Shown in pieces: positions 1-64,000 of a stretch of 64,000 nt of DNA (within the stretch, counting starts at the first letter, position 1; every line of letters starts with the position of its first letter). The notes under the pieces were generated by a model, which did not search any database, was not told the origin of the DNA, and was given only the letters and a program-made list of their open reading frames with translations. A program made the position numbers and the translations under genes. The DNA is from Magallana gigas (taxonomy: Eukaryota): contig NC_088861.1 in NCBI RefSeq assembly GCF_963853765.1, forward strand, positions 2,480,001 through 2,544,000, in the 5' to 3' direction.

Positions 1-408
1 CTGTCATCCCTGAGTTCACCGAGGGACAAGCCAACATCTGGGGGCTTCATTTTTCAATTTGTCAGGGGGACGGATTACTGTGATATACATGTTTTTTCCC
101 CTCTAAGCTCCTAGCCTGACAAACAGAGGTAATTCCCCAGCTTGTCCAGGTCTGTGTATGCTTACTGTGCAAACAGATTTAGTCTACAGATGTTCCAAAG
201 CTCCTCCTGTACAAATCTATCATTGTCGTTCCCTGCCAGCTTACTCTTTCTTTCTCTCTTTCTCTCTCTCTCTCTCAATTCTCAAATTCCATCATTCTAT
301 TATTCTATTATCATAAAACAGTATGTAGTGAAGAATCTAGCCACATATGTACATCACCTTAAATATTGACCAATTATAGTAAAATTAGAAATTTAATTGT
401 CATTGTTT

Positions 409-37429: not shown

Positions 37430-38410
37430 TACACTTAACGGAAAATCGGCAGATTTCAATGGTTTCCATGCGGTGAAGTGTCTTTTTTGGAGCTCTAACC
37501 TCTGTCGTATTTCTCAGTCTTAATATTAACCAGCTAGCTTAGTAATAGAGAAACGCTTCAGAAGATCACAACAATCGCTTCATCGGATTTATTTATCTTT
37601 GGGCCTTGTTGAAATGAACACACAATGTGAAAATTAAGTAATTGATAGCAACAGTTTTAAAAGAACTTGTTCAAAAGACTCGGATCCTTTTATGTTCATT
37701 TCTTTGTCAAGCATAAATTCAGTGTTGATCAAGTACTTTATATTACTTTGGCAAAGAGAAAAGACAGTTGAATTTTATAAGGGCGTGAAGGAGCACATTA
37801 TTATAGAGAATTGTTACGTTCAATACCTGTGAGACATATTCTCTAGTCATTGGTAAAAAAAAAAGTGATCCGCAATGGATTTGGATGACCTAGGAAGTAC
37901 AAAAGTCGGATCTGATATGGATGTGGTGGTAACAAGTTGAAATCTATTGAAATGAAATTCAATGCTGATTGTTTTGATAATTGCGTGTATTGTTTTAAAA
38001 CCTTTATTCTAAGCTGTCTTGTTTTCTTGACAGTCAGAGTCATAATTCATTGTAGTTGAAAGTTTGGCTGGTGTTTTGATTAAATTTTTAAAAAGGTTGA
38101 AATCTCCAATACTTTTCCCATGCAGTATTTGCCTTGAATATATTTAATTGATCTTGCTTTGCATGTGTATTGGAAGTTCTATTGAAAGTTAAGCCATTTA
38201 TTTATTTTGTTATGCAAGTTTGCATAAGTATGGATTTAAAAAAAACTGAGGTTCTATATATCACTTTTACAGGACGCTGTTAAGATGAACCAGCTGCAGA
38301 ATCTTCTGCACGACTCGTTGATTGCGACAGACCATGTACATCACTGCGCCATTATCAGACGGAAGGACTGTAATGTCAGAGCTAGCTCAGTGGGCTTCAA
38401 TGTAAGTACA
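37430..38410 (+). repeat. Segmental duplication unit, high-identity block (partner 52775-53745)
   Basis: About 1 kb of intron plus PFN4 coding exon 1 aligns colinearly with 52775-53745, roughly 93-98% identity by eye. Confidence 0.92.
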
Positions 38411-40282
38411 TCAGTGCAACATGTAGCTTTAAGAGATTCAATTTGCTATGTACGTGTTAATAGGGCTGTAACATATTAGAGCTAGCTCTGTGATCTTCAG
38501 TGTACTTAGTACATGTACACAGGGCTGTAATATTAGAGCTAAATCCATGGGTTTCAATGTAAGAACATGTACATGTATACAGGGCTGTCATGCCAGAGCT
38601 AGCTCTGTGGGCTTCAATATAAGTACATATATACAGGGCTGTAACATCAGAGCTAGCTCTCTTAGCTTCAATGTAAGTACATGTATACAGGGCTGTAATG
38701 TCAGGGCTAGCTCTGTGGGCTTTAATGTAAGTACATGTACACAGGGCTGTAATGTCAGCTAGCTCTGTGGACTTTATGAAAGTACATGTATTCAGGGCTG
38801 TAATGTCAGAGCTAGCTCTGAGGGCTTTAAAATAAGTACATATATACAGGGTTGTAATGTCAGAGCTAGCATTGTGAACTTCATGTAAGTACGGTACATG
38901 TATTCAGGGCTTTTATTTCAGAGCTAGCTCCATGGGCTTCAATGTATGTACATGTATACTGGACTGTTTGGTCAGAGGTAGCTCTGCATGTAGGCTTCTT
39001 TATGCAGAGCTGTAACATCAGAGCTAGCTCTGCAGGCCCCAATGTTAAAACATGTATACAGGGTTATGTCAGAGCTAAGCTCTGTGGGCTTCAATATATC
39101 AGAGCTAGCTCTCTTGGCTTCAATGTAGGAACATGTATACAGGGCTGTAATGTCAGAGCTAGCTCTGTGGGCTTCAAAGTAAGTACATGTATACAGATCT
39201 GTAGCATCAGAGCTTGCTCCATTAGCTTTAATGTTAGTACATGTACATGAATACTCGACTGTTATTTGGGCTTCAATGTTGATATGTATTTACAGGCTGT
39301 TAAGTAGATGGTCAGTTTAAGTACACATATTGTTCACTTGCATTTAATGTACTATAGGAGGAAGTGCCATCCATTGTTCATATTACAACTACTGAAACCA
39401 GTCAATCTTACACAGATTTGAGAGAGATTTTCTATAGTCAGAATCTATTGATGCATTAAATAGCTTTTAATAAGATGATTTCAGATTTATGCTCCCAAGA
39501 AACTTTTTATCTAGTAAATAATATAATAGTATATAAAACATTGTATAGTGATGGTTGCTTATTTTTGTAAGACTTTCGTTCTAATTGTACAGCTCCATCA
39601 TGACCAAGTGCAGATGATGTTGGATGCCTTTAAGAACCCACCCCAGACTCGGGAAGAAGGCATTTACTTCGATGACCAGCAATACAAATGTGTTCGTGCC
39701 GACAAGAACTCCATATATGGGAAATGTGTAAGTATACATTTACAAGCTGCCTTATGTGCTGGAATGCATAAAGAGGATTAATTTTATTGATACATTGCTC
39801 TATCTCTGATGGTTGTGTTTCAGAATTAAGTTTCAATATCAATTCTCTGATTGGCTGAATTTAGTCACATGAAAACAATGTATCTTATAAATCTTATAAT
39901 TAAACTGTCAAAGTCAAATCTGTACCCAGCTGTACGTGTATTACTTGTTTAAATCTTACAAATAAATTTTGTTCTCTATAGGGTACGTACAAGATTTGCT
40001 AAATAGCTCATGCATTTTAGATTATTATCTTAAACAGGATAAACGAGGTTTGATATTGGTGAAAACTCAGTCGATGCTCATTGTGGCCACATACACAGAA
40101 AACATGTTTCCTAGTGTGTGTGTAGAAGCAGTGGAAAAGCTAGGTAACCCACCTTACTAAAGAATATCCTTCACTGTAAAATACAGAGTTAACTCCCTTA
40201 TTTTTGTCCTATTTTAATACATTTTATCAATATATTCTACTTTTTTGTTTCAGCTGATTATTTCAAAGAAAAAGGAAAATAA
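38285..40282 (+). CDS. PFN4: Profilin-4-like protein, 128 aa, complete
   Basis: Exons 38285-38401, 39593-39727, 40038-40143, 40254-40282 give MNQLQNLLHDSLIATDHVHHCAII..ASSVGFN|LHHDQVQ..REEGIYFDDQQYKCVRADKNSIYGKC|DKRGLILVKT..LIVATYTENMFPSVCVEAVEKL|ADYFKEKGK*. This matches remembered PFN4 (REGLYF..YRCVRAD, VATYTEGMYPSICVEA). AATAAA at 40328. An acceptor at 38272 implies an upstream non-coding exon. Confidence 0.93.
38365..39300 (+). repeat. 54-bp minisatellite derived from the PFN4 exon1/intron1 junction
   Basis: Unit GTACATGTATACAGGGCTGTAATGTCAGAGCTAGCTCTGTGGGCTTCAATGTAA, roughly 15-17 diverged copies; the first copy is the exon end itself. Confidence 0.92.
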
Positions 40283-53799: not shown

Positions 53800-55720
53800 T
53801 TGCACACACCGTTGCAGTTATGAGACCACATCTTTCAAAAAATAATGATTTAATGCTTAAACACACATGTACTTACATTGAAGCCCACATCAATTTTTAA
53901 ACATGTATTACCTTCCTGCAAATATGATTTATTTTTAAAAAGCTCTGTCTTATTCAATGAGCTATGCGAAATTAAAGGAAGAGCCATTGGAACAGCCAAA
54001 TTATGCTGACAAAAATAGTGCACAGCGTTTTAAATTCTAATAACACAATTTTATTTTTCTTGCTGTAATTTAACGAATTTACTCTTGGTATACTAAGAAA
54101 TTAATCTATTGAATTCATTTAACCGTCACAATATATTTACATAAATGAAATATTAATCAGTGTAAGTATAATATCAGGTCGTGATCCGGTTTGAAGTCGC
54201 GAGAAAAGCAGTTCATGTTCTTCGAGAAATAATGAAGGAATGCTGAATGTATTCATACGCACCAGATTTGGTGATTGGGGATTCTGTGTTATGCGTAAAT
54301 ATCACTCAAATCAACCAATGCAATTTAATAGAGGGAAGGAAAGTGAATGTAAATGAAGGGTTGTAACATCAGAGCTAATTCCATCGGGTTCAATGTAAGT
54401 GCATTCATTCAGGAGTGTAATTTGGGTTTCAATGTTAAGATTTATTAAGTTATTAACAGACTGTAAAGTATGAAACTCAGTGTAAGTACATTGTACACAT
54501 ATAAGTACATTTGCACTTTAGTAAAGACTATAGGGAGTGCAAGCCACTTTTCACAATACAGCTACTGAAACCAGTCAATCTGATGGGGTTTGAGAGAATT
54601 TTTATTCAGTCACAACCAGTGTTGATGCATTAACTTTTAATAGGGTTATTTCAGAATTATGTTCCCAGGACACTTTTTATGTATAGTATATTAAGGTCGG
54701 TAGCGGGTTTAAAATTTTGCACCCTCTGCGCAGGGTATTGCGCATTACTGTCGTAAAACGCAAATGTAAAGTAAAATGTTCAAATATACAGGTTATCATG
54801 TAACGCTTTTATGTCAAAAAATTATATTTAGTATAAAGAATCGTTAGAATAATGTCAGAAGTATTTTAATCATCTCGCCGCTTCTTCAAAATCGACGTTA
54901 TTGTCGTCGGAATCAATGTCTTACGATGACGTCGGTTGATACTCTGACGTAACAACTGACAAAAATAAACGTCGTGCACTTTCTATTGCAGCGTCAATAA
55001 TTAAAATCAAAACTATAATTTGCAAAATAAAAACATATACGCGATCCACGCGATCCTTCTACGTTCTGTGTGAGTGGAAAGGTATTTTTTTTCTGCTACA
55101 AAAAAATTGAATTTGATTCGTAAACATTCTTTTTTCTTTTTTTTTTTTATACATTTCTATATGTAAAATGGCTGGCACGGCACGTTAATAGGATCATACT
55201 ATGAGGGCGGATAGCATAAAAACCATCCGGTCATTTTCGTTTTAATTTGGCAAAAAATTTACTTATACGTTAACCTTTCATCGCTGAAAATTAAAAGAAA
55301 ATCGTATGTCTGTATATTTTTAAATATAAAATTGAAAATGAAAACCCTCATTTTCTTATATAATCCTATATAGAATGTCGGTGATGAATCGGACATACGA
55401 CCAAAATTTGAGCGCGGCAAACAGATAAACTATCCGGTCAATTTACTTTATATTTTGCACATAGTTTTCTCATAAGTTGACATTTCACTGCAAAACAAAT
55501 TAAGGAAATCGAAACATTCTCCCCCGAGACTCCTTAAAATCATATAGGTATGGTTGCTTATTTTGGTAAGACTATTGTTCTAATTGTATAGCTTGACCAA
55601 GTGAAGATGATGTTGGATGCCTCTGAGAGTCCTAGCCAGGCTTGGGAAAACGGCATTTACTTTGATGACCAGCAATACACATGTGATCGCGCTGACAATA
55701 ACTCCATATATGGAAAGTGT
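53620..55720 (+). pseudogene. PFN4: Partial second PFN4 copy (coding exons 1-2 only in window)
   Basis: Exon 53620-53736 differs from copy A at 2/117 nt. Exon 55592-55720 (LDQVKMMLDASESPSQAWENGIYFDDQQYTCDRADNNSIYGKC) is open with intact splice sites but diverged. Homology to copy A stops at ~55980, before exon 3. Confidence 0.8.
54695..55533. mobile_element. TTAA-flanked insertion with GG...CC ends (Kolobok- or Crypton-like, non-autonomous)
   Basis: TTAA at 54691-54694 and 55534-55537. The flanks rejoin to match the empty site in PFN4 copy A (~39525-39550). TIRs are poor. Confidence 0.7.
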
Positions 55721-56259
55721 GTAAGTATACATTTACTTGGTGCTGGTATGCATAAAGAGAATAATTAAAGTAAATAATTCCTTTACTCTAGCTATCTCAG
55801 ATGTGTGTGTTTCAGAATTAAATTTGGCTATCAATCTCCTGATTGCATATGAAGACCATGTATAAATACCTAATTATAAACAGTCACTGTTAAATCTGTA
55901 CCAGACGATGTATCACTTGTCTATATCTTGCAAACAAGCAGGATAATATTCTCTGTAGGATGCTAGATTTGCTAAATAGTCAAAAAGTGACTTGGTAAAG
56001 GATACCTAATTGATTTCTGACCTTTGCTGGCCACGCGAAGACCATCTTTTTTTTTTTAACCCTGCCCACTTTTAATAAAATCTAATTTATGTATATACTG
56101 CAGCTTCTTTGACAAAACAAGTGTGTTTATAAGTAAAATGTTTATACAGGTCATGCAGTATTGTGTTTATATACATATTCCTTAGAAGCAGTATGACAGT
56201 GTGTAAAAAATATTTACTACATATATTTGGAAGACATCTATAAAATATTCTGTATTTAA

Positions 56260-56522
56260 GGTGATATGGGACACCTGTCAATATCAATGTGTTTAAAAAT
56301 TCATTTTAATCTCAATACTTTTACCAGTTTTTATTTTTCAAATTTTAAAATATTTGACGAAAAAAAAATGAATTTAAACTCATGACTTACAGATGCATAG
56401 AAAACGCTCTAAGTTTCTGCACTACACTGTTGGGTAATAGTTTGAGAAAAGATAAAAATAATGAAATTATACATGATTTTATTGTTTATTTCATTAGCCT
56501 AATGGAGATAACTCATACCAAC
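56260..56522. mobile_element. Degenerate TTAA MITE related to 13551-13879 (second copy 57295-57557)
   Basis: TTAA|GGTGATATGGGACACCT; internal AACTCATGACTTACAGAT..CGCTCTAA..CTGCACTACACTGTTGGG is shared with the 13.6-kb copy. Confidence 0.7.
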
Positions 56523-56562
56523 TTAAATTTAATTTCTAAGAGAACAAGTTCTTTTTTTTATA

Positions 56563-56607
<45 letters not shown>

Positions 56608-56985
56608 ATTTTGTCCGTCGTCCATCCGTCCGTCTGTAAACTTTTCCATTTTGCATGGACTTCTTCTCTAAAACCACCTGGCAAATTTCAACCAAATTTG
56701 GCACAAAGCATCCTTATGGTAAGACAAATATAAACTGCAGTAATAAAAAAACAATCTTTATCCAAAGCGAAGAAAACCTCGAAACTGTAGAAAAAGGGGG
56801 CGCATTTTAAAAAATCTTCTTCTCATGCAAGAAGTACTGAGTCAAATTCAACGTAATTTAGCCTAAATGATTCTTATTGTAGGGAAAATATAAATTGCAA
56901 AAATCATGGGCTAATTCTGTTTTAAATTTAAGTTATTCACGAAAATAATAAAGAAAGAATGGGGGTTGATCAGTTTATAACTTCG
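56563..56985 (+). mobile_element. HINE/Helentron-like non-autonomous repeat (second copy ~57598-58020)
   Basis: TTTAGCTCACCTGAGCTGAAAGCTCAAGTGAGC hairpin start followed by a GTCC microsatellite; the 3' limit is approximate. Confidence 0.65.
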
Positions 56986-57597
56986 GGTTCGGTATTTCGC
57001 ATATGGAAAACCAGGTTTTGTTTGGAGCAGCCATGTTTCACGCATTAAAATTGGTCAAACTGACCAAGATCAATTTGCTTGTTGTGCAATAGTTTACAAG
57101 CGAAGGGAATATTTGAAAATTGCAAAATATATTTGTAGATTGAGAATTCATATTTCAGTGCGTTGACATGTTCACTTGTGACGACGGTTTTAGCTTGTTT
57201 TGATTTTAGTTTCATTTTCGTTGATTATGTCTTTGAACTTAAGGGGAACTGTCGCATGCATTTTGGAATATTTATGAATCAAATCAAACATATAGGTGAT
57301 ATGGGACACCTGTCAATATCAATGTGTTTAAAAATTCATTTTAATCTCAATACTTTTACCAGTTTTTATTTTTCAAATTTTAAAATATTTGACGAAAAAA
57401 AAATGAATTTAAACTCATGACTTACAGATGCATAGAAAACGCTCTAAGTTTCTGCACTACACTGTTGGGTAATAGTTTGAGAAAAGATAAAAATAATGAA
57501 ATTATACATGATTTTATTGTTTATTTCATTAGCCTAATGGAGATAACTCATACCAACTTAAATTTAATTTCTAAGAGAACAAGTTCTTTTTTTTATA

Positions 57598-57642
<45 letters not shown>

Positions 57643-59989
57643 ATTTTGTCCGTCGTCCATCCGTCCGTCTGTAAACTTTTCCATTTTGCATGGACTTCTT
57701 CTCTAAAACCACCTGGCAAATTTCAACCAAATTTGGCACAAAGCATCCTTATGGTAAGACAAATATAAACTCGATAATAAAAAAACAATCTTTATCCAAA
57801 GCGAAGAAAACCTCGAAACTGTAGAAAAAGGGGGCGCATTTTAAAAAATCTTCTTCTCATGCAAGAAGTACTGAGTCAAATTCAACGTAATTTAGCCTAA
57901 ATGATTCTTATTGTAGGGAAAATATAAATTGCAAAAATCATGGGCTAATTCTGTTTTAAATTTAAGTTATTCACGAAAATAATAAAGAAAGAATGGGGGT
58001 TGATCAGTTTATAACTTCGGGTTCGGTATTTCGCATATGGAAAACCAGGTTTTGTTTGGAGCAGCCATGTTTCACGCATTAAAATTGGTCAAACTGACCA
58101 AGATAAATTTGCTTGTTGTGCAATAGTTTACAAGCGAAGGGAATATTTGAAAATTGCAAAATATATTTGTAGATTGAGAATTCATATTTCAGTGCGTTGA
58201 CATGTTCACTTGTGACGACGGTTTTAGCTTGTTTTGATTTTAGTTTCATTTTCGTTGATTATGTCTTTGAACTTAAGGGGAACTGTCGCATGCATTTTGG
58301 AATATTTATGAATCAAATCAAACATATAGACTTCGGTAAATCAGACAGCTGATTGTTTACCTGCGCAAAATGAGCAAAATCTGATGCACTAACAACATAA
58401 AATGAAATAAAATTCATTTGTACTTTTCATTTTATTCGTAATTCCGTACAATCGTAATGGTTGAATAATGCAACATGATTTGTTAAGATGCTAAGCATTT
58501 TCAGTCTAAACGGAGATTATTTTCGCTGCTAGAGATATATACCTGTAGGTATATTTATGATGAAAAATAAATTATGCTCTTTCTATGTTTTCAGTGCCTT
58601 TTTAATTTTTTTAATTGTTTACAATTTTCTATAATTTACTGGCCTATCTAAGAGTCATGTTATGAGTTATAAGCAAGATACAGAACTTTGTGCACAATGC
58701 TATGTTTGCACAAAGAGCTTTGATCATGCTTTAATTTCTTTATAATATAAATGCTGAATAGAAAATACCAAGTTTAAAAATCTTCAATTGAATGTAATAC
58801 ATTCATGTAAACAAAAACATGACTCAAAACAAGGTCTGTATCTTCCAAATAATTCTACGATTGACGCTGAAATTTTGGTTAATCTTTAGAAATGTCTTGT
58901 TAAAAGGATGATATGCAGTAACTACTTTTTGGTGCCCCTTCTTCAACGATGAATTATAGGTATATATTATCTACACCAATTTTGATAGTTTTTTAAATAC
59001 AAGTAAATAAAAACGGAGTCTTTTAAACAGTTGCCATACTTCTGACACATTATTATGAGGGGAAAAGCATTATCGTTCTTAAAGAATTTTGCAGTGGAAA
59101 AGCATCTTTGTCTGTAGCCATTTATTCTTTTTTAATGAAGATGAAAATAATGGATGGGCCTTAGTATGGGCCTAAGTGCAATAGAGCTATATGCCTGTCA
59201 ATACATTGATTAGAACTATCATGCTACAACATTATTCAGTTTTATAGTTTATTCATCAGTCAAGTGAGTAAGGTTCTGAAACGTCATGTGTAATGAATTC
59301 TCGCCAGGTAAACGATAATCATTTATAATTGAGAAAACCAATTAAATTTTTGAATGTTTTTGATTCGAGAATTGAGCGCATTGAGGTACAATTTTCTTCT
59401 TTCACATAATTATATAATTATAGGAAAGCTGTCGTGGGGGGGGGGGGGGTGTAAAAAAAAAAGTACTGGAGGTTAACTGTGAACCCTACAAAAAATTTAG
59501 TTAAATATCTTGCATAGGATCTTATTTTTGGTAAAAATGGTATTTCATAAGGCTGCAATGTGAAAGATTATGTGTATACAAAAATAAGTGTAAAATTTGG
59601 ATACTTTATAGTTTTTTTTTTCCTACCAAAGGGCCATATTGCACAATATAGAAAAAAGTCACGTGACCAGTCATGGCGCAGTAGGTGGTTTTCGGAGGCT
59701 CTGACTTTTTTGCCCAAAATGTACACTTCAAAAGACTGGAGCTTGAAATTCTCGCAGCGTAAATAGATATTTTGTATGCATTATGCTCAAGCGCCTGCAT
59801 TTAACTATTATCTGTTGAAATAGTAAAGATAAACAATATATAGGGACAAGGCAGATAGACAGTATAGTGGTATGAACTCTTTTCACTATTCAAAACAATC
59901 AACGTCACTAGTGTTACTAGTGTATCCCTGTCTTAATTTGTCTGTGTTGTCCTGTGTTTGAATCGTGGTAGTCCTTGAGTAATAAATGT

Positions 59990-62204
59990 TTACTCTCTGA
60001 CAATATTCAACAACGAAAAATTCAGCGCGCCTGTTTCCGTTAAAATTCGGAATCACCACATCCAATATCCAGTTATCTAGTTAATGAACATGGGTGGACA
60101 TAATCAAAACAAACCCCACTCGTCATCACGAGACCAATCAAGGTCCCAAACAATGTCCCAATCAAACAAACGTCAGAGGCCAAACTCTGATACAGATTCC
60201 TCGCAAAACTTGACTCAGGACCCTGTCAGACCTAAGTTCCTTAATTATTAGAAAACCTGTCAAATGACGAGGAACCCCTACGCGATCCACATCAAAAACC
60301 TCCAAAAAAGGATATCCATGCATTGACACTAATTTGTTTGTTCATTTTCTAACAAATTCTCAAAAACAATCTTTGAAATTAAGTGGACCAGCCGGTTAGC
60401 TATTGAATCTTAAACTGCCTGCTTCGGGAGCATAACATTGCTGATCCTCTCCTCAGTAGGCGGGGTTTATCATGCAGACGCTGGGCTGAACTCAGTGAAG
60501 GTCACTCAGTGGAAAATTTTCGCTTTATATATTTATCACTGTTGCTTTTATATATCACAGTACTGTTTATATATACACGACCTAGCTTTATATATATACA
60601 CACAATTCTTTATATATATTGGCAATTCCTTTATATATAAAGCTGCTTATTTTTATATATTTGAGTTTATCTGATATATATGTGTGTGTTTTTACATATA
60701 CATTTGTACAATGAGTTTTTCTTATATAGACTTTTCTTTTTATATATATTATGTGGCACTAACTGGCTTCTGTAGAAATCCACTAAAATTACCTTCGATC
60801 GATGCTCGATTAGCAATTCAAATCGTTTGGGACCTCCATAAGGTTCAAAGTCTCGACCTAGGGACATCATTGTGCGCTTCACAAGATATCGAGACCGTGA
60901 CGCTGTTTTCAAGAATAAGAAGAACTTAAAGAGCTTCAACACAAACCCGACGAACAATTACAAAATATTCGTCAACGAGGCTCTAACAATACGCAGGGCC
61001 CTGCTGTTTAAGAAGGCCCGTGCAGCTGTCAAAACAGGCCATGCGTCTTCCTCTGGACTAATGACGGGAAAATAATTGTTAAACTTAAAAATGACGAGAA
61101 AATCACCATTCGTTCCGAAGAAGATGTAAATAAAATTTCGGCAACAGGTGAATCCCGCCATCCAAGCTATGCAGCCGCTGCCGCTTGCAACGCCGACTAT
61201 TGCGCGCTTTGTTTTCGGACAAACTTTGTCAATATCAAACAATTATTATTATGTCTCCCTTCCTATGTCAACCAAACCAAGTTCAGAGCCAATCAGTTTG
61301 CTTGGTTTTTTTTAAATATAAAAATTGTACAGCATTCAATCATGTTTTTCTTAGATGTTCATACAATGTCAAACACGTGTGCTTTTGTATTTGTTGTGTA
61401 TCACATGTGTGCCTACCTCTTTACTTTTTCATTTTTTAAGAGGTACATGTACGTGTTTACACAAAATACGTCTCTCTTGTACATACCTATTTACTTGTAT
61501 ATGCTCAATATATTTCATGTGATCTCTATTATCTCTTGTTCATTTAATACTTTTTTCATTGCTTTTGGTACTGATGTCCTACTTTCACTTGTTTTGAGGA
61601 CAAGCAATACCTTTCACCCACATTGCAACACTTGTAAAATATTATTTGATCTGTTTTTGTGTTATTCCATACTCTCAATGTTTTTCATTATTTTGCACTT
61701 TTTTGCTTATTCCAGTTATATTCATAACGGCAACTGTCAACAGTTTTTGGTTTATTTGGAATTAGTTCAAGAATATTATATACATGTTTTTCGCAAATTT
61801 CCTTGTTGCGGCAATAAAGTCATTAATGAATCAAAGACACTAGATTATGGGTAACAGCATTAAGCAATATCGAGCCGCAATAGGTAATTTTTACTCTGCA
61901 TGTAGGCAGCTTATTCGTTCAGAAATTTTCGTTATTTTCAAATTATAGCATATTTTGTCGTTTATTAATATGTTGATGAGAATGTGTGATTTTAGTAGCT
62001 TTCATAGAGTTTATGGTATCGTTCCATACATAATTTTTTCCATGTACTTTTTTGCTTTAGTTCTAATACTATATCGGGTGATATTGAAACCAATCCCGGC
62101 CCTTTTTATGAAAGTGTAGTTGAAATTATTCATTTAAACGTTCGAAGTATTAGAAACAAGATAGATTCCCTTAACGCCATAGTTGGTGATTTCGATATTG
62201 CGTG
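59990..62204 (+). mobile_element. Decayed APE-type LINE (CR1/L2-like): ORF1 remnant and start of ORF2
   Basis: ORF1 RRM-type NRLGPP*GSKSRPRDIIVRFTRYRDRD..FVNEALT at ~60790-61080; ORF2 start SGDIETNPGP..IIHLNVRSIRNK..FDIAC at 62074-62204, cut by an LTR insertion. Confidence 0.85.
62074..62103 (+). other. 2A-like ribosome-skipping peptide motif SGDIETNPGP
   Basis: TCG GGT GAT ATT GAA ACC AAT CCC GGC CCT matches D(V/I)ExNPGP, directly upstream of the APE endonuclease start. Confidence 0.85.
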
Positions 62205-62788
62205 TGTCACGGTGTGACATTCAATCTTTCGGACTATTTTTAATTATTGTGTAAATTAACTTTTTCGGACTTTGTGTAAATTGCTACAAAAACTTTTCAT
62301 CTATTTCGACAACTGTTTTATAAACGTTATAAATTCCGCGCAGCATTGATCCCACCTGAGGCACAATCAGTGATGGACAGCTAATCTTTTAATTGACTTC
62401 TGTTTATGTTTATTGACACTTAAGCTTCTTTCATCTTATTAATCCTTTTATGTACATGCTGCTAAAATGTCCCGAGTTACTCAATAGCTGTTTGATAATT
62501 GATTTACTTACATCTGTACTTATTATGTTAATCCTTCATTGTATTGTTCCATTGTTCATTATATATTATTCTGAATTGTAAAATATGGTCAGTTGGAATC
62601 AGACCTTCGGTGCTGATGCATACCAAACTCACGTAAAAGTATATTTCATGTAAAATCTATATTAAAGTCTGAAAACTAAAACGCGTGTTGGCTTGTTGGA
62701 GGTTTTATGAGGCTGGGTCCAACAACAAGAGTATAAACTCACGGTTGGCCCAATATTAGTCCTGTACGGGAGAGAACGCCCCGTAATA
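62205..62788 (+). repeat. 5' LTR (584 bp)
   Basis: TGTCACGG...CCGTAATA imperfect inverted ends; the first 197 bp match 63804-64000 with 1 mismatch. Confidence 0.88.
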
Positions 62789-62790
62789 TT

Positions 62791-62807
62791 TGGTGGAGAA
62801 TCCGGGT
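62791..62807 (+). other. Primer-binding site, tRNA-Ala type
   Basis: TGGTGGAGAATCCGGGT versus the tRNA-Ala 3' complement TGGTGGAGAATGCGGGC (15/17, recalled sequence). Confidence 0.7.
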
Positions 62808-62931
62808 AACGACACCCGGGACTGCTACATATATTTTGTAGTAGTCAGATCCTGGACCTCTACAACAGTTTAGCGAGTTTCCCTAGATTCAGAGTCTACA
62901 GATGAAGAAGACGATTTAAACTAGATTCAAC

Positions 62932-63756
62932 ATGGAATATTCTTTCCGACCGCAGTGGAGACAGAAGAAGTTCAGCTTCCCCTCATGTCAGCGTCCCGTG
63001 TGCGGAAGGTGCGGAAACGTGCATCCCAACGTTTTATGTTTCGCGTTCAACCAGAAGTGTTACCGATGTCACAGAATTGGACATTATTCCAGAATGTGTT
63101 TTACACAGATGAAGAAACCAACAAAATGTGTTGAAAAGGAAGCAGTTTTGGGTCGTAAAAAGACGCGAGACATGAAACGACTGTGCAAATATCTTGAAAA
63201 CAAACGTACTTTGAGAGAATTGCCGTTTAATTCAATTCGTAACAATCAATTTCATTCTTTGTTTGATACCTCAAGTATTCTACGAACTGAGCTTCACAAC
63301 ATTAAGATTCAGCTACGCAAGTCCGATCAACTTACGAAGAGTATGGCTGAAAATCTACAAAGTGCTAAGTCTGAGAATGCAAGACTTCAAAGTGAAAATA
63401 CGGATTTGAGAACAAAGCTCCAAGAAAACTCGAAACGTTCTGACATTGATATGTATGTGAAGAAAATTCAAAAATTAGAAGCAGAGGCACACGGTGATAA
63501 AGTACTCATGGATTTAATGCAGAGGAAACTAAAAGATATCGGGAGTGAACATTCTCAATATGTAATGAAAATTCAAACAGAGGCTGATGATACAATCAAA
63601 CAGCTGAGGGAACAAAACAACGCCCTGCTGCAGACCATTTGGGTATTGGAATGTGATAACGAACATCTAGAAGCCGTGTTGCATGATAAACAACTTGACC
63701 GCCGATTTCAACAACACAGGCAGCAAAGAAGACAACAACGCGGCTACCGTCGATGA
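62932..63756 (+). CDS. 274-aa zinc-knuckle (nucleocapsid-like) and coiled-coil protein
   Basis: Intact ATG-TGA ORF. CGRCGNVHPNVLC and CYRCHRIGHYSRMC near the N-terminus, an L/E/K/Q heptad-rich region from ~aa115 to 250, and an R/Q-rich tail. Confidence 0.85.
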   Translation: MEYSFRPQWRQKKFSFPSCQRPVCGRCGNVHPNVLCFAFNQKCYRCHRIGHYSRMCFTQMKKPTKCVEKEAVLGRKKTRDMKRLCKYLENKRTLRELPFNSIRNNQFHSLFDTSSILRTELHNIKIQLRKSDQLTKSMAENLQSAKSENARLQSENTDLRTKLQENSKRSDIDMYVKKIQKLEAEAHGDKVLMDLMQRKLKDIGSEHSQYVMKIQTEADDTIKQLREQNNALLQTIWVLECDNEHLEAVLHDKQLDRRFQQHRQQRRQQRGYRR

Positions 63757-63803
63757 TAAAAATTCAAAACACGAGGACGTGTTTTACGCGGACGCGAAGC
63801 ATG

Positions 63804-64000
63804 TGTCACGGTGTGACATTCAATCTTTCGGACTATTTTTAATTATTGTGTAAATTAACTTTTTCGGACTTTGTGTAAATTGCTACAAAAACTTTTCATC
63901 TATTTCGACAACTGTTTTATAAACGTTATAAATTCCGCGCAGCATTAATCCCACCTGAGGCACAATCAGTGATGGACAGCTAATCTTTTAATTGACTTCT
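63804..64000 (+). repeat. 3' LTR (truncated by the window end)
   Basis: Identical to 62205-62401 except for one substitution (TTGATCC/TTAATCC). Confidence 0.92.

Follow-up and report, generated by a model that had tools for sequence, protein, structure and literature searches.

The 64-kb stretch of Magallana (Crassostrea) gigas DNA analysed here (the window) ends within a mini LTR element, which occupies positions 62203–64000 and has a total length of about 2.2 kb (Table 1). The element lies in a decayed LINE, whose endonuclease ORF it cuts: in translation, the LINE is readable exactly up to the start of the repeat. A 66-aa piece of this flank has no match in Pfam. This neighbouring LINE has a remnant of its own ORF1, different from the protein of the mini element.

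Table 1. Features of the mini LTR element and its flank (window positions; aa, residues of the 274-aa protein)
Feature	Position	Strand	Basis and remarks
Flank: decayed non-LTR retrotransposon (LINE)	62084..62202	+	Translation: 2A-like GDIETNPGP, then start of APE endonuclease ORF
5' LTR	62203..62790	+	Start from identity with the 3' copy; end inferred from the PBS
Structured leader, four-way junction, PBS in outer stem	62788..62888	+	Folding compared with shuffles
Primer-binding site (PBS), complementary to the 3' end of an alanine-type tRNA (...CTCCACCA)	62791..62808	+	Model alignment
Upstream ORF, five codons	62902..62919	+	Read from sequence; same frame as the main ORF, one stop between
274-aa ORF, putative capsid-less Gag substitute	62932..63756	+	Uninterrupted; stop included
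Two zinc knuckles: aa 24–36, CX2CX3HX4C; aa 43–56, CX2CX4HX4C	63001..63099	+	Family alignment, profiles
Basic helix, aa 69–95, ending in the signature RD..R...Y...K..LRELPF	63136..63228	+	AlphaFold, alignment
Long coiled-coil-type helices, aa 104–110, 113–167, 171–257	63241..63702	+	AlphaFold
Disordered basic R/Q/G tail	63697..63753	+	Charge, pLDDT, relatives
Hairpin of 8 bp within the 46-nt spacer (3' untranslated)	63766..63785	+	Folding
Weak polypurine-like stretch directly before the 3' LTR	63786..63801	+	11/16 purines
3' LTR, first 199 nt only (window edge)	63802..64000	+	Match to the 5' LTR

The LTRs are visible as a direct repeat of 62200–62401 and 63799–64000, with the spacing of 1599 nt. 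Continuous identity begins at 62203/63802 (TGTGTCAC...), the preceding pair (62202 G, 63801 A) being outside the repeat. There is one mismatch in 199 comparable nucleotides (62348 G vs 63947 A), that is, 99.5% identity; the initial annotation gave one mismatch in 197 bp, which is the same count taken from 62205, an equally possible start. The palindrome TGTCAC-GGT-GTGACA reported there indeed opens the 5' LTR at 62205–62219. The LTR length, 584–588 bp, is defined solely by the position of the PBS. At the termini, the 5' TG is present, and the 3' end placed by the PBS (...GTAATATT) has no canonical CA. Putative TATAAA motifs are read in the 5' LTR near 62318–62335 and 62733, and an ATTAAA motif near 62662. 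Since the window ends inside the 3' LTR, the LTR 3' end and the target-site duplication lie past its edge, and a tandem arrangement stays compatible with the visible sequence. Neither further copies nor solo LTRs were found elsewhere in the 64-kb window. Rfam scans at a permissive E-value detected no hammerhead ribozyme or other RNA family in the terminal repeats, and hence the element is not considered a retrozyme or a Penelope-like pseudo-LTR.

The PBS starts with TGG, adjoins the 5' LTR and occurs only once in the window. In a search with 131 nt, a model mimicking tRNA-Ala aligns with its complement over the T-arm, the acceptor strand and CCA (E = 0.0046); this model is the tRNA-like domain of tmRNA and not oyster tRNA-Ala. 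Otherwise the assignment follows known tRNA sequences and is probable. Thus the tRNA-Ala PBS proposed initially is in place and its complement fits a tRNA-Ala-type model. A T-arm-like hairpin extends from the PBS to 62825. The fold of the leader has z = −3.6, none of 200 shuffles being equally stable. The complement of the whole leader was also considered as a copy of a tRNA, and this was rejected, as the anticodon-arm-like hairpin has neither U33 nor the Ala anticodon and the 5' acceptor strand is absent. The T-arm and acceptor part of this complement do fit a tRNA. In the relative P0067, the stop separating the upstream ORF from the main one is missing and the ORF begins at the upstream-ORF position.

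Across the family, no other part of the element is as well conserved as the leader, which far exceeds the protein in this respect. Judged from the read-through proteins P0031, P0069 (Pinctada) and P0076, nucleotide identity may reach 92–96% in the leader vs at most 64–67% in the ORF. The complement of the tRNA 3' end is conserved from Magallana to Pinctada.

The single uninterrupted 274-aa ORF was correctly noted at the outset; with this base composition, about 4e-5 open frames of such length would be expected in a window. The protein begins with two knuckles, whose Cys and His are fully or almost fully invariant among family members. In PDB profile searches, EIAV NCp11 ranks first, with an alignment over both knuckles (E = 2e-6), and HIV-1 NCp7 matches near 1e-3; the Pfam zf-CCHC family matches 14 of 21 family members, and AlphaFold folds the knuckles at pLDDT 82–90. 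The label "Gypsy-type", attached to them initially, found no support in any test, the spacings being those listed in Table 1. The basic helix that follows (pLDDT 84–96) belongs to a region in which R79, R83, P98 and F99 are invariant in 42 sequences. The helix together with the RELPF region has no match to known domains in Pfam and profile searches. The long helices span about 150 aa with pLDDT >90. Heptad periodicity is seen for aa 100–168 (p = 0.001) and is weaker for aa 171–263 (p = 0.06); profile matches of this part are to generic coiled coils only. The tail has net charge +7 and pLDDT <50, and in relatives it usually terminates in RGRGRF or RGRGRY. Hence the order in the initial annotation, knuckles first, then a predicted coiled coil, then a basic R/Q tail, is borne out by AlphaFold, Pfam and profiles.

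No capsid, protease, RT or integrase was found in the 274-aa protein by Pfam, profile searches, two AlphaFold models and Foldseek. The AlphaFold model made with 42 sequences (mean pLDDT 83) comprises knuckles and long helices only, and three Foldseek searches for a hidden capsid fold, including PDB and viral libraries, gave knuckle-level matches only. Among the 21 members, no Gag or capsid family of Pfam was seen, zf-CCHC being the sole Pfam match; RRM and Transposase_22 were likewise without a Pfam match in the family protein. Thus the absence of visible capsid, protease, RT and integrase domains, noted from the sequence, agrees with the structure check, which yields no ordinary capsid domain.

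The ORF stop and the second repeat are 46 nt apart. The hairpin in this spacer has only a modest advantage over shuffled sequence (z = −1.9), with 10 of 200 shuffles being equally stable. Moreover, the sister subfamily P0027/P0010 is two codons shorter at this place, and therefore, although the hairpin itself is present as described, its conservation is doubtful and is not apparent in that subfamily. The segment before the 3' LTR is not a clean polypurine tract, in line with the initial remark that a G-rich PPT is missing. The translated junction of the spacer and the LTR, ...REACVTV, is common to the window copy and P0027.

An exhaustive HMMER search produced 114 cluster representatives, all of 376 aa or shorter. 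None of the 114 is fused to pol or to a polyprotein, and none contains a protease, RT or integrase segment. All named members are from pteriomorph bivalves of several orders, the genera being Magallana, Saccostrea, Pinctada, Mytilus and Tegillarca, that is, oysters, pearl oysters, mussels and ark clams; judging by the named sequences, the family is confined to pteriomorph bivalves. Many subfamilies occur per genome, and the copies are dispersed, with five of equal length on five Pinctada chromosomes and seven on different scaffolds of Mytilus coruscus. Recurring throughout the family are the start ME-Y/F-x-F/L-RPQW, the Cys and His of the knuckles, RELPF and the RG tail. Existing annotations of the named members go no further than "CCHC-type domain-containing" or hypothetical bivalve protein. 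Scans of metagenome and viral contigs guided by the protein yielded no relatives, a scan with the exact PBS/leader pattern gave no match, and a literature search found no matching bivalve coding mini-LTR element, "gag-only" element or PBS string.

The flanks of relatives were viewed indirectly, via read-through proteins. P0027 and P0010, whose copies align with the window ORF at 64% identity, continue past the ORF across the spacer into the start of the LTR, while P0031, P0069 and P0076 begin in the PBS/leader and run on into the ORF, with spacing similar to that of the window copy. Hence the layout in diverged lineages is the PBS, about 120–140 nt, the ORF, about 46 nt and the LTR. One case, P0029, has the 3' end of the ORF joined straight to the PBS/leader with no LTR between, which is unexplained by a simple model. 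As the ORF start, the ORF end and the ORF–LTR junction recur in diverged copies, a one-off internal deletion of a longer element, listed at the outset as the first way in which the annotation could fail, is contradicted; the spread of the family over several orders and the lack of pol fusions point the same way. In simulations of random substitution, 6% of trials with 38 amino acid changes kept an open frame, and 0 of 400 with 126 did so; real relatives at both distances have intact ORFs. This comparison of sequences suggests that the ORF is under selection. The window copy is a recent insertion and the family behind it is old; hence the element, initially called young, is so as a copy but not as a family.

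We consider it fairly probable, at roughly 60%, that these sequences form a family of non-autonomous LTR retrotransposons, which encode their own capsid-less substitute for Gag and are mobilised in trans by a helper element. The element appears to keep the cis signals for reverse transcription and integration, namely the LTRs, the tRNA-Ala-type PBS and the conserved structured leader. Since no protease, RT, RNase H or integrase is encoded, these would be supplied in trans by an autonomous LTR element. The 274-aa protein would stand in for a normal Gag: its N-terminal knuckles and basic R/G tail may bind and chaperone nucleic acid, and its central long helices may multimerise it. Most likely it coats the transcript of its own element during translation, and the resulting ribonucleoprotein could be favoured for entry into helper particles or for use by the helper RT and integrase. 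In the 64-kb window, no helper with the same LTR ends, PBS or leader was seen. The sole autonomous LTR element there, of the Gypsy type at 46.9–50.7 kb, was tried in this role and rejected: its gag (47249–48149) is an ordinary one with the usual capsid–knuckle order, and it has nothing in common with the mini element.

A further-reaching version, which we advance tentatively and hold to be somewhat more doubtful than not, is that of an ancient capsid-free LTR lineage of pteriomorph bivalves with a knuckle/coiled-coil/RG-tail Gag, forming an ORF1p-like ribonucleoprotein on the extremely conserved tRNA-Ala PBS/leader and borrowing RT and integrase from another element. The elements would then be stable coding "satellite" retrotransposons, and the strategies of LTR and non-LTR elements would have converged, a possibility that we hold just as loosely.

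Alternatively, the protein may be the true first-ORF Gag of an unrecognised autonomous LTR lineage, from which the window copy and its near relatives would have arisen by deletion, without forming an independent satellite lineage; we regard this as unlikely. Gene callers split gag and pol lying in different frames, so that the two are called as separate proteins, and therefore the missing fusions are indecisive and do not prove that there is no pol downstream. The PBS/leader is conserved far beyond the protein, as expected if it is fitted to one RT/integrase lineage, and some relatives reside on contigs of 12–90 kb, with the neighbouring genes outside the inspected sequence. However, in two oyster subfamilies the LTR begins within about 46 nt of the ORF, many members are on contigs of 1.0–2.5 kb, a protease, RT or integrase segment is found in 0/114 representatives, and no C-terminal read-through contains pol-like sequence.

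It is still less probable that the protein acts mainly against a helper or a competitor, as an RNA- or Gag-binding decoy poisoning assembly, or that it has been co-opted by the host. Modules for nucleic-acid binding and multimerisation, lacking a shell-forming domain, would suit a decoy, restriction factors derived from truncated Gag are comparable, and annotation pipelines call the members as ordinary genes. Against this, the members are multi-copy and dispersed, lie between LTRs and form many subfamilies per genome, which is the behaviour of a transposon and not of a single-locus host gene, and no ortholog at a fixed locus has been shown. Finally, a host gene or a tandem or segmental duplication flanked by an LTR-like repeat is very improbable: the second repeat is visible for 199 nt only with no target-site duplication in view, the 3' terminus is non-canonical, the PPT is weak and the P0029 junction has no LTR, but the complement of a tRNA 3' end is conserved from Magallana to Pinctada at the expected place, the unit interrupts a LINE ORF, its copies are on several chromosomes and the knuckles are of the retroviral NC type.

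LTR elements that are not autonomous are generally regarded either as stowaways without coding capacity (TRIM, LARD) or as bearing an ordinary Gag (plant TR-GAG). The present case is an animal LTR family that keeps a protein, apparently selected for a long time, without a shell-forming domain; the protein family is old and was previously unnamed. If the protein serves its element, an LTR-type RNA could compete for helper machinery by means of an RNA-binding multimeriser alone, and one may ask whether a capsid is needed at all for this competition. If, on the other hand, it works against the helper, the transposon would be carrying a restriction factor. Either way, well over a hundred sequence clusters receive a name and a testable role, and the conserved PBS/leader provides a concrete probe for the helper search.

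Small non-autonomous LTR elements have been described in bivalves. The biv-TRIM elements have repeats of 202–218 bp and an interior of 77–80 bp, with no clear PBS, and are non-coding (PMC6934838). No occurrence of their conserved internal motif was found in the window. Helenus, reported from Pteriomorphia, is also non-coding; its LTR includes a tRNA-like sequence, and in bivalves its PBS is of the Lys, His, Ile, Pro, Glu or Ser type, but not Ala (PMC10886601). The oyster element resembles both in being a small non-autonomous LTR element of bivalve hosts, and differs in being coding and much longer. It is not a TRIM, as these are under about 1 kb and non-coding, whereas it has about 2.2 kb and a conserved 274-aa ORF. 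A Helenus-type element was rejected as well: ARAGORN found no tRNA gene in the window, and there is no tRNA match inside the LTR.

The plant TR-GAG elements (terminal-repeat retrotransposons with GAG domain) are shorter than 4 kb and have LTRs, a PBS and one Gag-related ORF; they have no protease, RT, RNase H or integrase and are presumed to be mobilised in trans, with no autonomous partner found (PMC4350172). They are described from plants only, and in their ORFs a zinc knuckle comes after recognisable capsid motifs (UBN2) (PMC4350172). The oyster element shares the size below 4 kb, the LTRs and PBS, the single ORF and the lack of protease, RT, RNase H and integrase. In contrast, its protein has no capsid motifs, the knuckles come first and the long coiled-coil-type region after them, and its host is a bivalve.

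At the protein level, the double CCHC knuckle of the NC type and the position as the first ORF after the PBS and leader are shared with the Gag of retroviruses and LTR retrotransposons, while the two-domain capsid fold is lacking and the knuckles are N-terminal, not C-terminal. The Gag of foamy viruses combines coiled coils with Gly/Arg-rich nucleic-acid-binding boxes and a capsid-like core, and has no Cys-His knuckles. The oyster protein similarly pairs coiled-coil-type regions with a Gly/Arg-rich stretch; unlike foamy-virus Gag, it has Cys-His knuckles and no capsid, and no search revealed any similarity between them. LINE-1 ORF1p is a small basic coiled-coil RNA chaperone of non-LTR elements, consisting of a coiled coil, an RRM and a C-terminal domain. 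Like ORF1p, the oyster protein is element-encoded, small and basic, and it combines coiled-coil-type and putative nucleic-acid-binding modules without a shell; unlike it, there is no RRM or C-terminal domain and no similarity in sequence or fold, and the carrier has LTRs and a tRNA primer site. By this analogy, the function of the oyster protein is probably nearer to that of LINE ORF1p than to that of a shell-forming Gag.

The segment 62200–62401 is matched by 63799–64000, 1599 nt downstream within the 64-kb window, the identity starting at 62203 and 63802 with TGTGTCAC. The second repeat is cut by the window end, and the 199 comparable bases contain a single mismatch (G at 62348, A at 63947). 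Hence the direct-repeat element proposed in the initial annotation is present at 62203–64000, and the palindrome at the start of the repeat was found as described there. The length of the LTR, about 588 bp, is set by the position of the primer-binding site (PBS) alone, and the inferred 3' end of the LTR lacks CA. No second copy of the PBS 18-mer was found in the window, with up to three mismatches permitted. The reverse complement of the PBS terminates in ...CTCCACCA, preceded by a T-arm-like hairpin; we take this 3' end, from eukaryotic tRNA sequences, to be typical of tRNA-Ala. In a 131-nt scan Rfam aligned the PBS complement to the tRNA-like domain of tmRNA, which mimics tRNA-Ala (T-arm, acceptor strand and CCA; E = 0.0046). 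At the given base composition, the expected number of open frames as long as the ORF of the element is about 4e-5 per window. The 46 nt between its stop codon and the second repeat contain a stretch with a weak purine bias (purines at 11 of 16 positions) and the 3' hairpin noted earlier, which is indeed present, with a stability just modestly above that of shuffled sequences. The anatomy is that of an LTR retroelement without pol.

Features of the mini element, its insertion site and its protein
Feature	Position	Strand	Remark
Decayed non-LTR retrotransposon	60872–62202	+	ORF1 C-terminal-like remnant in two frames, 2A-like motif, APE start
PBS 18-mer TGGTGGAGAATCCGGGTA	62791–62808	+	begins 588 nt into first repeat unit
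Sole long ORF of mini element	62932–63756	+	274 aa
8-bp hairpin	63766–63785	+	in 3' spacer; z -1.9 against shuffles
Two small knuckle folds	aa 21–58		AlphaFold pLDDT 82–90
Helix	aa 69–95		runs into RELPF loop (AlphaFold)
Long helices	aa 104–110, 113–167, 171–257		AlphaFold pLDDT mostly >90
Tail	C-terminal		disordered in AlphaFold model

Upstream, on the forward strand, a 2A-like motif (GDIETNPGP) leads directly into the beginning of an APE-type endonuclease (...IIHLNVRSIRNKIDSLNAIVGDFDIAC), with a frameshifted LINE ORF1-like remnant farther upstream. In invertebrates, there are reports of 2A-like peptides at the starts of LINE ORFs. The endonuclease reading stops precisely at the repeat start, therefore the mini element lies inside a decayed non-LTR retrotransposon, as insertion predicts. 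The longest open frame of the window, 280 stop-free codons at 61012–61854 (+), is situated in a T-rich spacer; its translation is of low complexity and rich in F, L, Y and I, and it seems to result from base composition and not to be a gene.

A word-based search yielded ten oyster relatives of the ORF. One is an intact copy, 274 aa long and 86% identical, and one 90%-identity cluster among them holds 141 members. Since the claim that the element lacks pol and capsid depends on the absence of longer kin, the exhaustive HMMER search (1.84 billion cluster representatives, E <= 1e-3) was run with no length window. It returned 114 proteins of 41 to 376 aa, none of which sits within a polyprotein. 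The mini element is more general than could be seen from the single copy. The only longer relative seen anywhere is a Saccostrea cucullata model of 562 aa (P0147) with EGF-type domains in its N-terminal part; it looks like a chimeric gene model, an annotation artefact of the element in which EGF-domain exons are fused to part of the ORF. Another chimeric model apparently caused by the element is K1QAC4 of Magallana gigas (K1QAC4_MAGGI in UniProt, P0008), where the first 91 residues of the ORF, 100% identical, are followed by an unrelated Gly/Pro-rich tail.

The named members come from pteriomorph bivalves without exception (Magallana, Saccostrea, Pinctada imbricata, three Mytilus species and Tegillarca granosa), those of Saccostrea being the nearest to the window ORF, and are annotated as 'CCHC-type domain-containing' or hypothetical, nothing else. 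In Pinctada, five copies of equal length are spread over five chromosomes, and in Mytilus coruscus seven are found on different scaffolds; the family is multi-copy, dispersed and long-lived. When random substitution of the window ORF was simulated, the frame stayed open in 6% of trials after 38 residue changes, as many as separate the window ORF from the intact 86% copy, and in none of 400 after 126 changes, as many as separate it from the Saccostrea proteins. The intact relatives, set against this simulated frame loss, are indirect evidence of purifying selection on the ORF.

Nearly all full-length members share a common plan: the start M-E/D-Y/F-x-F/L-RPQW, knuckles around positions 22 and 41, the motif RD..R...Y...K..LRELPF near residue 95 followed by a variable helical region, and a tail with RGRGRF or RGRGRY as its last residues. 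Mean column identity is merely 16–25%, yet the Cys and His residues of the knuckles do not vary among 21 sequences and are conserved to at least 90% among 42. Four members (P0093, P0115, P0136, P0134) have an additional knuckle or knuckle pair near the C-terminus besides the N-terminal pair.

With Pfam the window ORF gives a sub-threshold zinc knuckle and coiled-coil noise, nothing more; zf-CCHC matches 14 of 21 diverse relatives, and no Gag, capsid, protease, RT or integrase family was found in any of the 21. Retroviral nucleocapsid proteins rank at the top when the family profile is compared with all PDB sequences, EIAV NCp11 covering both knuckles (E = 2e-6) and HIV-1 NCp7 scoring near 1e-3, and the remaining matches are generic coiled coil. 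The AlphaFold model from 10 close sequences has an unfolded N-terminus; that from 42 diverse sequences has a mean pLDDT of 83. Hydrophobic residues show heptad periodicity at aa 100–168 (p = 0.001) and weakly at aa 171–263 (p = 0.06), and the net charge is +18 in the first 100 residues, -2 in the helical core and +7 in the tail. The order read earlier from the sequence, knuckles first, then long helices and a basic tail, reappears in the 42-sequence model and the tail charge. A hidden capsid was seen neither in the AlphaFold models nor by Foldseek against PDB and predicted viral structures, which gave knuckle-sized matches only. The ORF encodes a conserved stand-alone protein with nucleocapsid-type knuckles, long helices and a basic tail.

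The flanks of relatives were inferred from predicted proteins extending past the normal ORF ends. Two of these, P0027 and P0010, which share 64% identity with the window ORF, continue past the stop and across the spacer into ...REACVTV, corresponding to the window spacer-to-LTR junction 63772–63813, and a third, P0058, continues into LTR sequence matching 63838–63915. Therefore the ORF is directly followed by the LTR in these oyster subfamilies too, and the possibility raised in the initial annotation, a one-off internal deletion of a full-length element, is excluded.

In P0031 and P0076 (ENA sequences) and in P0069 (Pinctada imbricata), the N-terminal extension is a translation of the PBS and leader. 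The highest nucleotide identity to the window permitted by each protein alignment is 92% in the leader and 66% in the ORF for P0031, 94% and 64% for P0076, and 96% and 67% for P0069. As judged from these alignments, the PBS/leader is the most conserved part of the element, and unusually conserved. The PBS lies 141 nt from the start codon in the window, about 138 nt in P0031 and about 117 nt in P0069. The predicted fold of the window leader (62788–62888) is a four-way junction with the PBS in the outer stem (z -3.6; none of 200 shuffles equally stable). In P0029, a Logan contig product related to 63400–63745 and 62787–62886, the ORF 3' end (...RQQRG) abuts the last bases of an LTR and the PBS/leader with neither 3' spacer nor LTR between ORF end and leader, a junction that the simple model of the element does not account for; its leader is similar to the one in a different subfamily.

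Nothing capsid-like is present in the three N-terminal extensions, thus the leader is followed first by the knuckle-protein ORF in distant lineages as well. We consider the element an LTR retrotransposon, non-autonomous and carrying its own capsid-less Gag substitute, with a probability of about 0.6. Transcription would begin within the 5' LTR and terminate within the 3' LTR; an autonomous LTR element would supply both the RT for minus-strand synthesis, primed by tRNA-Ala, and the integrase for insertion of the cDNA. The protein may bind its own encoding RNA via the knuckles and the RG tail and multimerise via the helices, steering this RNA to the helper machinery, a role that we propose tentatively, at somewhat under even odds. 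An autonomous lineage, so far unrecognised, with this protein as its first ORF is unlikely. Less probable still is that the protein acts mainly as an inhibitor or a host-co-opted factor. That the unit is no retrotransposon at all is very improbable.

Several other features are present in the window. A decayed, frameshift-broken Gypsy-type LTR element (46909–50742, +) has an ordinary gag order: a capsid-like segment precedes a single CCHC knuckle and a DTGA protease, and RT, RNase H and an integrase zinc finger come after these. It has no LTR or PBS in common with the mini element. Adjoining its truncated integrase, ORFs at 50580–51765 (-) that encode a PHD finger and a YqaJ/viral alkaline-exonuclease-like domain are probably another mobile element. 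There is a tandem array with a 54-nt period (38500–39300), a segment of about 1.7 kb recurring 15.3 kb away at 83–97% identity (38020–39750 and 53356–55743), and blocks of 300 and 226 nt recurring exactly 1035 nt apart (56259–56966 and 57294–58000).

The literature search found no published account of the element or the protein, although an unpublished database entry (e.g. in Repbase) may exist. The closest structural class is plant TR-GAG, LTR elements shorter than 4 kb whose ORF is Gag-only and for which no partner is known (PMC4350172). However, TR-GAG ORFs have capsid motifs ahead of the knuckle (PMC4350172) and the bivalve family does not, and thus lacks one of the features that define the class. 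The bivalve TRIMs, biv-TRIM (PMC6934838) and Helenus (PMC10886601), are non-coding, whereas the mini element is coding, and they differ from it in size, PBS and LTR content. With retroviral Gag the bivalve protein has the nucleocapsid module in common but not the capsid, and it resembles LINE-1 ORF1p in logic only, having no RRM or CTD. We rate the capsid-less protein architecture as undescribed, and the element itself, an LTR retrotransposon that is non-autonomous and bears a Gag-derived ORF, as one of a known kind.
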